A stretch of 64,000 nt of DNA from Dimorphilus gyrociliatus (GCA_904063045.1 CAJFCJ010000019.1:2672684-2736683), one strand, 5' to 3'. Shown: positions 62,602 to 64,000, numbered from the stretch's first letter. Made by a program: numbers and translations. Notes: a model not told the origin generated them from the sequence alone.

Positions 62602-64000
62602 ATGCTCCGAGGACAAACACTTCAGGAAGAGCTCTCTAATCCTGTTCGATTGTTAAAAAGTTTAGCAGATACATCTCCAGATCGAATATCTTTAATTGGA
62701 TTACACCAAAGAATATCCTATTCGGAATTATTTACGAATGCTTTAAATCTATCGGAATATTTACAAACATATAACTGTAACCAAAAAGTTATTGGTATTG
62801 TTATGGAATCCTCAATTGAGCGAATTGTGGCAATAATTGCTGTTTGGATAAAGAAGTGTATAGTGTTGGCTTTCGATCCTCAAATACAACCAGAATCTTT
62901 TATTATTGAAAGAATAAAGGAAAATAATGTTGATTTAGTAATTTCAAACTGTAACGCAAGAAATCATTTCGCTCCAATAGTTATAAATTATAAAGAAGCC
63001 ATGAATTCTATTCCTATGACACGAACGATAAATTTAAACGATTTATCATCAGGCGATGTTTTATGCATATTATACACATCCGGATCAGAGGGGAAACCAA
63101 AAAAGATCGAATTGAGAAGCGAATCGTTAATTGTCCGTCTAGTATGGCAATGGCAAACGTTGCCTTGGCAAAAGAAGGAAATCGCTTTGCATAAAACGAG
63201 TATTCTTTTCGTTGATTCATGGACGGAAGTATGGGGAGCAATTCTCAAAGGTGTTCCATTAGTTATTGCTAGTGAACAACAAAAGATGGACGTCAACTCC
63301 TTATTGAATTTAATCGATAGTTTTAAAATTACTCGAATAGTTTTAGTACCCAGTGTTTTAGACCTTCTCTTGCAAAGTGGTAGAAGTTTACCAAACTTAC
63401 AAACAATAATATCATCGGGTGAAAAACTTCCATTAAAATTAGCAACTGATTGCTTAAAGTTTTGGAATGATAAGCTATTGGTAAACCTCTACGGAATGAC
63501 TGAAGTAACTGGAGATGTAACTTTTGAAGTTTTTAGATCAATTCCAGATTTGAATTCGAAAATTTATAATTGCGCTCCGTCAGTTGGTCAACCTGTATTT
63601 AATACTAATATATACATTGTTAAGGAAAATCGAATTTGTAATGAGAGAGAAATTGGTGAAATTTGCATTAGTGGAGATTTACTAGTTACTGCCAACGTTA
63701 CTGATAATAAATATTCGAACGAAGGAAAGCATAGTCGAATATTTTATACTGGAGATCATGGTCTTATAAGAGAAGGACGAGTTTATGTTTTGGGTAGAAA
63801 AGACGACGAATTAAAGTTAGCCGGTGCTAGAGTTCAACCCAGTCAAGTTAGCGAAGAACTGCTAAAAATGCCTGCTATAAGCGAAGCATTCGCTATGGGC
63901 CTAGATAATCGTTTAATCCTTTACTATACATCCGATAACAGCATTACGAATGAAGATGCAGAGAATTTCTTAATCGAACGTCTCCCAAGTTATATGGTTC
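62602..64000 (+). CDS. ebony-like: Ebony-like NRPS adenylation domain (beta-alanyl-amine synthetase family), truncated by the window end
   Basis: Open frame from ATG 62602 to the end of the window. Motifs LYTSGSEGKPK, RLVWQW, KTSILFVDSWTEVWG, RIVLVPS, SSGEKL, NLYGMTEVTGDVT, YTGD, GRKDDELKLAG.RV, LPSYMV are collinear with Drosophila Ebony. Confidence 0.88.
   Translation, partial: MLRGQTLQEELSNPVRLLKSLADTSPDRISLIGLHQRISYSELFTNALNLSEYLQTYNCNQKVIGIVMESSIERIVAIIAVWIKKCIVLAFDPQIQPESFIIERIKENNVDLVISNCNARNHFAPIVINYKEAMNSIPMTRTINLNDLSSGDVLCILYTSGSEGKPKKIELRSESLIVRLVWQWQTLPWQKKEIALHKTSILFVDSWTEVWGAILKGVPLVIASEQQKMDVNSLLNLIDSFKITRIVLVPSVLDLLLQSGRSLPNLQTIISSGEKLPLKLATDCLKFWNDKLLVNLYGMTEVTGDVTFEVFRSIPDLNSKIYNCAPSVGQPVFNTNIYIVKENRICNEREIGEICISGDLLVTANVTDNKYSNEGKHSRIFYTGDHGLIREGRVYVLGRKDDELKLAGARVQPSQVSEELLKMPAISEAFAMGLDNRLILYYTSDNSITNEDAENFLIERLPSYMV

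Follow-up and report, generated by a model that had tools for sequence, protein, structure and literature searches.

A divergent Ebony-family non-ribosomal peptide synthetase gene, probably for a maker of beta-alanyl-amines, in Dimorphilus gyrociliatus

The question raised by the locus described here is whether an open reading frame (ORF) with several altered core motifs can belong to a working enzyme of the Ebony family. Animals make beta-alanyl-amines by way of Ebony-type enzymes, and in insects these products serve as pigment and cuticle precursors and as intermediates of transmitter recycling. The frame lies at the 3' end of a 64,000-nt stretch of the Dimorphilus gyrociliatus genome (GCA_904063045.1 CAJFCJ010000019.1:2672684-2736683; G000:C19:2672684-2736683 in our numbering of the 78-Mb, 349-contig assembly), which is referred to below as the window. 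An initial annotation of the window had described it as an Ebony-like non-ribosomal peptide synthetase (NRPS) with a beta-alanine specificity code. We consider it probable that the frame makes up the 5' two-thirds of a working animal gene, which encodes a 796-aa single-module Ebony-family NRPS, the more divergent of two paralogues and a likely maker of beta-alanyl-amines.

The gene structure was established from the window and the adjoining contig sequence (L002, C19:2735285-2745284). Window positions 62602-64000 (+) hold the first 1399 nt of exon 1, a single uninterrupted frame of 466 codons that covers motifs A1 to A9 and is still open at the window end. The annotated ORF is real, and its start codon is the first ATG, 9 nt 3' of an in-frame TAG. 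The frame had been reported as missed by the ORF track; it is indeed absent from that list, but merely through an edge effect, because the list leaves out frames running off the window. An early in-frame stop beyond the window, which had been raised as a possible objection, was not found, and 284 further codons complete exon 1 (750 codons; G000:C19:2735285-2737534, +, ending at window-equivalent position 64851). Exon 1 is followed by a 59-nt intron (GTAAGT..TAG; C19:2737535-2737593, +), after which the same phase continues into exon 2 (46 codons plus TGA; C19:2737594-2737734, +). Support for the intron comes from its GTAAGT..TAG signals, from the continuity of the frame, from the database model P0001 and from its conservation in an orthologue and a paralogue. 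The two-exon model gives a protein of 796 aa (the window protein) that is identical to P0001. The gene is located on a 3.8-Mb contig among animal genes, and an Rfam scan of it returned no match.

The domain order of the window protein is that of Ebony. An AMP-binding domain (Pfam PF00501, E 3.8e-49) was detected at aa 22-361, together with a weak AMP-binding_C match. The amino-acid adenylation domain model TIGR01733 matched with E 8e-55, and adenylation domains of NRPSs in the PDB matched the protein with E values down to 7e-60. The carrier (T) domain and the amine-selecting domain that the initial annotation expected downstream were both found beyond the window. Motif A10 reads TGKIDR (K484). 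The T domain (PF00550, PP-binding) was matched at aa 511-574 with 23.8 bits against a cut-off of 20.8 (E 5.2e-5); its carrier site GGNS, with Ser541, lies in FQQLGGNSISAM, and GGNS is present in nearly all family members. The last 222 residues matched the sequence of the Ebony C-terminal-domain structure 6dym with a phmmer E value of 6.7e-5, and a profile of 22 family members matched 6dym with E 2e-70. An AlphaFold2 model of this domain (aa ~585-796) had a pLDDT of 92.3 and a pTM of 0.88. In a Foldseek search of the PDB the best match of the model was again 6dym (TM 0.80/0.83, root-mean-square deviation 2.5 Å), and the next matches were arylalkylamine N-acetyltransferases (AANATs) of Drosophila, Tribolium and Aedes. 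The family-invariant C-terminal residues F608, S642, E685 and G739 are all present. Because an adenylation domain and a T domain are followed by a 6dym-like C-terminal domain, the architecture, A-T-(GNAT/AANAT-like), is the Ebony arrangement. A canonical condensation-adenylation-thiolation module, as judged by PF00668, is not present: Pfam detected no condensation domain in the 755-aa frame, and the gene starts shortly after the upstream stop. The Pfam PQQ families gave no match in the window protein either. End-to-end collinearity was observed with a nemertean protein named 'beta-alanyl-bioamine nonribosomal peptide synthetase ebony-like' by NCBI (E 6e-86), with an Owenia fusiformis protein (31% identity, BLASTP E 8e-109) and with a sandfly Ebony (25% identity, BLASTP E 4e-56). 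The AMP-binding match and the two BLASTP alignments lie well beyond what chance would give.

HMMER aligned aa 196-345 of the protein with two TycA adenylation-domain structures, 7ywk/7ywj, and the specificity residues of the adenylation domain were read from this alignment. Where the aligned range begins, the numbers of these structures are lower than those of GrsA 1amu by 3. V204, D205, T208, V247, I270, S272, L296, G304 and D305 correspond to GrsA positions 235, 236, 239, 278, 299, 301, 322, 330 and 331. A MAFFT family alignment of 53 rows gave identical code residues, and the nine Stachelhaus positions read by eye in the initial annotation (V-D-T-V-I-S-L-G-D) were thus correct. The tenth residue, K484 in TGKIDR (GrsA 517), lies just outside the window, and the full code is VDTVISLGDK. 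Each residue of the beta-alanine-type pattern (V235, D236, S301, G/A330, D331, K517) is present. Five insect Ebony-clade sequences, two of them named ebony, have VDSVVSFGDK, with S, not A, at position 239, and the codes of annelid relatives are VDTVVSLGDK and VDSVISFGDK. In the 53-row alignment the spiralian subgroup of P0134, P0136, P0137 and P0140 has VD[TS][VL][IV]S[FLY]GDK, and P0089, an AASDH-like A-T-PQQ protein, has VDTTISLGDK. A beta-alanine-type pocket appears to be the best reading, because the code pattern fits and because beta-alanine use has been published both for fly Ebony, which conjugates it (PMC11214079), and for vertebrate AASDH/ACSF4-U26, which is reported to activate it (PMC10531068, citing Drozak 2014). 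Literature searches for beta-alanine code strings found nothing relevant.

The same alignment revealed a second class of codes among spiralians. Most spiralian Ebony-type proteins (P0003, P0121-P0133, P0135, P0138, P0139, P0141-P0144), a larger subgroup that includes Lineus and Capitella, have VD[VI]x[IVM]NxADK, in which position 301 is N and position 330 is A. This N301/A330 class stands beside an insect-like class, VDxxxSxGDK, and Owenia fusiformis has both. Bacterial modules have VDWVISLADK and similar codes. In the trees, the bacterial sequences closest to the animal Ebony/AASDH group are the NRPS proteins P0222 (a Chloroflexota protein of 844 aa), P0007, P0009 and P0005, which have beta-alanine-type codes (VDWVISLADK, VDWVVSLANK, VDLVISLGEK).

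Several motifs of the adenylation domain depart from those of the family, as the initial annotation had noted for the SGSEG P-loop, the loss of ARGY from A6 and the changed A8. The A3 P-loop, YTSGSEGKPKK (aa 158-168; window 63073-63105, +), has E163 in place of the family T/S and K168 in place of the family G/A. It is followed by VWQWQTLPW (63142-63168, +), a motif that recurs in most of the Ebony-family sequences scanned, and by A4, FVDSWTE (63208-63228, +), in which the alignment places V204, D205 and T208. The stretch 63334-63423 (+) holds V247 in RIVLVPS as well as I270 and S272 in TIISSGE. Motif A5, NLYGMTEVTGDV (63484-63519, +), holds L296, G304 and D305 and contains NLYGMTE, with M299 for the family S. 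A6, GEICISGDLLVTANV (63655-63699, +), is without (A)RGY/GY, and a 10-residue deletion comes next. A7, FYTGDHG (63742-63762, +), keeps the ribose-binding Asp. In the A8 hinge, GRKDDELKLAGARVQPSQVS (63793-63852, +), which includes GRKDDELKLAGARV, KLAG replaces the family KIRG and the final E-I/V-E is replaced. A9 starts with LPSYMVP (63982-64000, +) and is cut by the window end. In place of the canonical forms of A3 (SGSTGxPKG) and A8 (GRxDxQVKIRGxR), the window protein has SGSEGKPKK and GRKDDELKLAGAR, which are unique or nearly so in our sample. These two deviations bear on activity more than on family membership. The A7 TGD Asp, the A10 Lys484, the A5 Thr-Glu and the carrier Ser541 are kept. 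Literature searches for an SGSEG P-loop found nothing relevant.

A second Ebony-type gene was found in the same genome by a six-frame search with the nemertean protein. It is located at G000:C3:~2321924-2324700 (L004:409-3190) and has at least three exons. This C3 paralogue has a canonical P-loop (SGSTGIPKG), a canonical A8 (KIRGHR) and the code VDTT/VSFGDK, whose residues are spread over two exons that were read separately. An additional intron is present in its adenylation domain and, as in the window gene, a phase-0 intron after HPVT. In its A7, KMGD stands for the (Y/R)TGD of the family, and its A6 is without GY.

The placement of both copies was examined in phylogenetic trees. The trees were built without D. 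melanogaster Ebony and flatworm sequences, and the exons of the C3 paralogue entered as separate rows, not joined, with its first exon absent. A 52-row tree (LG+C20+F+G4) had the window protein inside the Ebony clade, together with its orthologue and the C3 paralogue, with a Shimodaira-Hasegawa-like approximate likelihood ratio test (SH-aLRT) support of 95; in trees of reduced sets the window protein kept this position with SH-aLRT values of 93 and 89. The AASDH-like P0089 fell outside that clade in unconstrained maximum-likelihood (ML) trees. With the paralogue omitted, the window protein grouped in the spiralian S301/G330 subgroup with support of 98, and with the window pair omitted, the C3 paralogue was nearest to rows of the same subgroup. 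The two copies were recovered as sisters with support of 90-97. A lineage-specific duplication is likely on these trees, and not proven, because the program marks the sister pairing as one in which long branches meet. In the 52-row tree the stem of the window protein measured 2.42 substitutions/site, against a median end branch of 0.69. The suggestion of a fast-evolving or specialised paralogue is supported by the second copy and by a stem two to three times the length of other members' branches.

Two further features were considered as marks of the duplication and rejected. The deletion between A6 and A7 does not mark sisterhood of the paralogues, because the two deletions differ in place. 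The position of the conserved intron does not mark a recent duplication, because V… tails after PVTQ suggest that the intron is present in numerous spiralian members as well. In many ORF-style gene calls, spiralian Ebony-type proteins end in unrelated V-initial tails right after N(T/S)xPVTQ (alignment A1, columns ~213-225). This pattern suggests that the tails are read-through of a GT donor and that an old, conserved phase-0 intron is present at the position of the sole intron of the window gene. The spliceosomal intron position is common to the window gene and the C3 paralogue, and apparently to other spiralian members.

An orthologue of the window protein (P0002, 89% identical) was identified on Logan contigs from two runs, and its gene shares with the window gene both the intron and an upstream DSE-like neighbour. 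No difference from the window protein is seen in its odd motifs, and the ten code residues are kept except for V247I. The ratio of non-synonymous to synonymous substitution rates (dN/dS, or omega; Nei-Gojobori) between the two was 0.076 over the 750 codons of exon 1. The window copy is under strong purifying selection. By region, dN/dS fell from 0.11 in the adenylation core through 0.05 in the carrier to 0.02 in the C-terminal domain. The odd motifs are common to both species, and therefore the divergence is older than the species split and has been kept since.

Between the two species, synonymous change is distributed very unevenly along the gene. Identity at third codon positions was 0.85 in codons 1-210 and 0.62 in codons 211-750 (Fisher p 2e-10), as seen in window 62602-63231 and L002:2251-2450 compared with L008:4144-6593. 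The 59-nt intron is identical at 56 of 59 positions and exon 2 at 131 of 141; the flanks and the neighbouring gene reach just 68-77%. The pattern points to constraint at the level of the nucleotides or to local gene conversion.

From the homology to Drosophila Ebony and to the NRPSs of flatworms, we infer the substrates, the product and the persistence of catalysis in spite of the altered motifs as follows. The adenylation domain (aa ~20-495) would form the acyl-adenylate from ATP and a bound small beta-amino acid, for which beta-alanine is the likeliest candidate. The acyl group would then be transferred to the phosphopantetheine arm on the carrier Ser541. The GNAT/AANAT-like domain would bind a biogenic amine and catalyse the attack of this amine on the thioester, which would release the beta-alanyl-amine. 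The genome contains one candidate phosphopantetheinyl-transferase, and about nine group-II pyridoxal-phosphate (PLP) decarboxylase loci are possible sources of the amine and of beta-alanine.

Several observations weigh against a conventional beta-alanyl-amine synthetase. The TIGR01733 score of 186 bits is below the trusted cut-off of 317. TSGSEGKPKK, with both E163 and the terminal K168, was found only in the window protein and its orthologue among ~295 P-loops from 238 adenylating proteins. Because A5, A6 and A8 deviate together with the P-loop, adenylation could be slowed or altered. In animal enzymes the predictive value of specificity codes is poor, and such codes do not separate beta-alanine from other small amino acids that resemble it. 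No match to PF03417 (AAT) was found in a six-frame search of the genome as a whole. The Drosophila Tan hydrolase, by which the Ebony reaction is reversed, belongs to this family; the negative is weak, as genes match exon by exon. A fly-style Ebony/Tan transmitter shuttle is therefore unsupported, and a one-way product (a signal, a cuticle or pigment precursor, or inactivation) is somewhat favoured. Finally, in approximately unbiased (AU) tests on 26 rows (LG+G4), pairing of the window protein with the long branch of the one AASDH-like sequence was not rejected (p 0.44), and pairing with insect Ebony was not quite rejected (p 0.06). The phylogenetic check proposed in the initial annotation is thus answered in part: the ML trees place the protein inside the Ebony clade with the AASDH-like sequence outside, and the AU test leaves the AASDH pairing open.

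Some of these points are shared by an explanation that we regard as unlikely, though deserving of attention, in which the protein is a neofunctionalised member of the Ebony family. It might use another acyl substrate (gamma-aminobutyric acid, glycine or another small amino or carboxylic acid), have changed kinetics, or play a non-catalytic or regulatory role with the C-terminal domain as its main functional part. The unique P-loop, the change of KIRG to KLAG in A8 and the loss of GY from A6 are consistent with this, as is the stem of 1.3-2.4 substitutions/site across trees, compared with a median of ~0.65. Constraint is tightest in the C-terminal domain, whose omega is roughly a fifth of that of the adenylation core, and the C3 copy, with its canonical P-loop, could retain the ancestral job. 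However, the ten code residues fit the beta-alanine-type pattern and are kept in the orthologue but for the single replacement, the key residues of ANL (adenylate-forming) enzymes listed above are present, and the omega of the adenylation core still represents strong purifying selection. A more specific version, which we put forward as a doubtful speculation, is a lineage-restricted neofunctionalised paralogue which, with its re-modelled E163/K168 loop and its strongly conserved amine-selecting domain, could make a distinct beta-alanyl-amine or related acyl-amine, perhaps a signal, for example in sexual development, comparable to beta-alanyl-tryptamine in flatworms. Dwarf males are known in D. 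gyrociliatus.

A decaying pseudogene, bacterial contamination or a recent horizontal transfer is very improbable. Several core motifs are degenerate, and the nearest sequence matches in the PDB and NCBIfam are bacterial NRPSs. However, the frame is open over 796 codons, and the low dN/dS against a syntenic orthologue with the same DSE-like neighbour, together with motifs identical in both species, argues strongly against a decaying pseudogene. Contamination or a recent transfer is opposed by the spliceosomal intron, by the position of the gene on a long contig among animal genes and by closest relatives that are animal Ebony-type proteins. Least probable of all is an orthologue of AASDH/ACSF4-U26, the other A-T enzyme of animals that activates beta-alanine, for which the nearly identical code of P0089 and the AU result might speak, but whose exclusion rests on domain architecture and not on the tree alone because of that AU result: P0089 carries a PQQ/BamB-like beta-propeller (PF13360/PF13570) where the window protein has its 6dym-like domain, falls outside the Ebony clade in the unconstrained trees, and is 24% identical over the A-T part, compared with 31% end to end for the Owenia Ebony-type protein.

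Two other frames were noted at the locus. An ORF of 350 aa (L002:5363-6415, +) with a signal-like start is located ~2.9 kb downstream, and EGF-like pieces occur further on (L002:7947-8189). We take this ORF to be a cysteine-rich laminin/netrin N-terminal-like sequence, and presumably the next gene. An antisense open stretch of 166 codons is present in window 62991-63488 (-), opposite nt 390-887 of the coding sequence, and 134 codons of it are open in the orthologue. It was taken as a chance frame, probably a by-product of the sense frame, because its position does not match that of the block in which synonymous change is low.

Returning to the reading of the window gene as a functional Ebony-family NRPS, it is a new and unusually divergent member of an already known enzyme family and represents no new kind of system. 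The result is mostly confirmation: the gene is already a database prediction, with AMP-binding as its sole Pfam record, and the presence of the family in annelids has been published (PMC10531068). Our literature search found no paper characterising an annelid Ebony-type member or the genes of this species. The point of interest, as judged from the sequences compared, is the conserved atypical loop, predicted to bind ATP, in one of two paralogues. One genome holds a natural pair, a copy with a canonical P-loop and a copy with an odd loop under strong purifying selection. This pair could show what P-loop variation is tolerated by ANL enzymes, and whether the paralogues divide amine substrates or tissues between them.

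Among known systems, Drosophila Ebony, represented by its C-terminal structures 6DYM-6DYS, and its insect orthologues share with the window protein the A-T-GNAT/AANAT-like order, without a canonical condensation domain. The WQW and FVDS motifs, the GGNS carrier site and a code of the type V-D-x-V-x-S-x-G-D-K are also common to the window protein and insect Ebony, and the modelled fold of its C-terminal domain matches that of Drosophila Ebony. It differs from insect Ebony in its low identity (~25%, and 19% in the C-terminal domain), in being ~80 aa shorter, and in the code residues at 239/299/322, which are T/I/L in the window protein and S/V/F in insects. Ebony-type enzymes have SGSTGxPKG and KIRG where the window protein has SGSEGKPKK and KLAG, and the window protein is without the ARGY of A6. 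The setting is also unlike that of fly Ebony, as no match to a Tan-type partner was obtained in this genome.

The enzyme AASDH/ACSF4-U26 resembles the window protein in its adenylation and carrier domains, and the AASDH-like P0089 in its near-identical code; its C-terminus is a PQQ-repeat beta-propeller, whereas that of the window protein is GNAT-like. The closest relatives by tree and identity belong to the spiralian S301/G330 subgroup, for example the uncharacterised Owenia fusiformis proteins P0136 and P0137 (31% identity end to end and 33% in the C-terminal domain). Their codes, VDSVISFGDK and VDTVVSLGDK, nearly match that of the window protein, and NSHPVT precedes the last intron position in all three. 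In contrast to the window protein, their P-loop is canonical and they have retained GY in A6 and KIRG in A8, and the branch of the window protein is longer by a factor of two to three.

It has been shown that adenylation domains of Annelida, Nemertea, Platyhelminthes, Cnidaria and others fall in the Ebony clade (Suring et al. 2023; PMC10531068). The NRPSs of the flatworms Schistosoma mansoni (Sm-NRPS) and Schmidtea mediterranea belong to an Ebony-related family and make beta-alanyl-tryptamine (PMC11214079; PMC10531068), and flatworm beta-alanyl-amines can be reproductive signals (PMC11214079; PMC10531068). Two paralogues coexist in planarians, one of which makes beta-alanyl-tryptamine, and Schmidtea also has a gut paralogue (PMC11214079). 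According to this literature, the flatworm NRPSs are thus like the D. gyrociliatus pair both in belonging to an Ebony-related family and in the presence of two paralogues in one genome.

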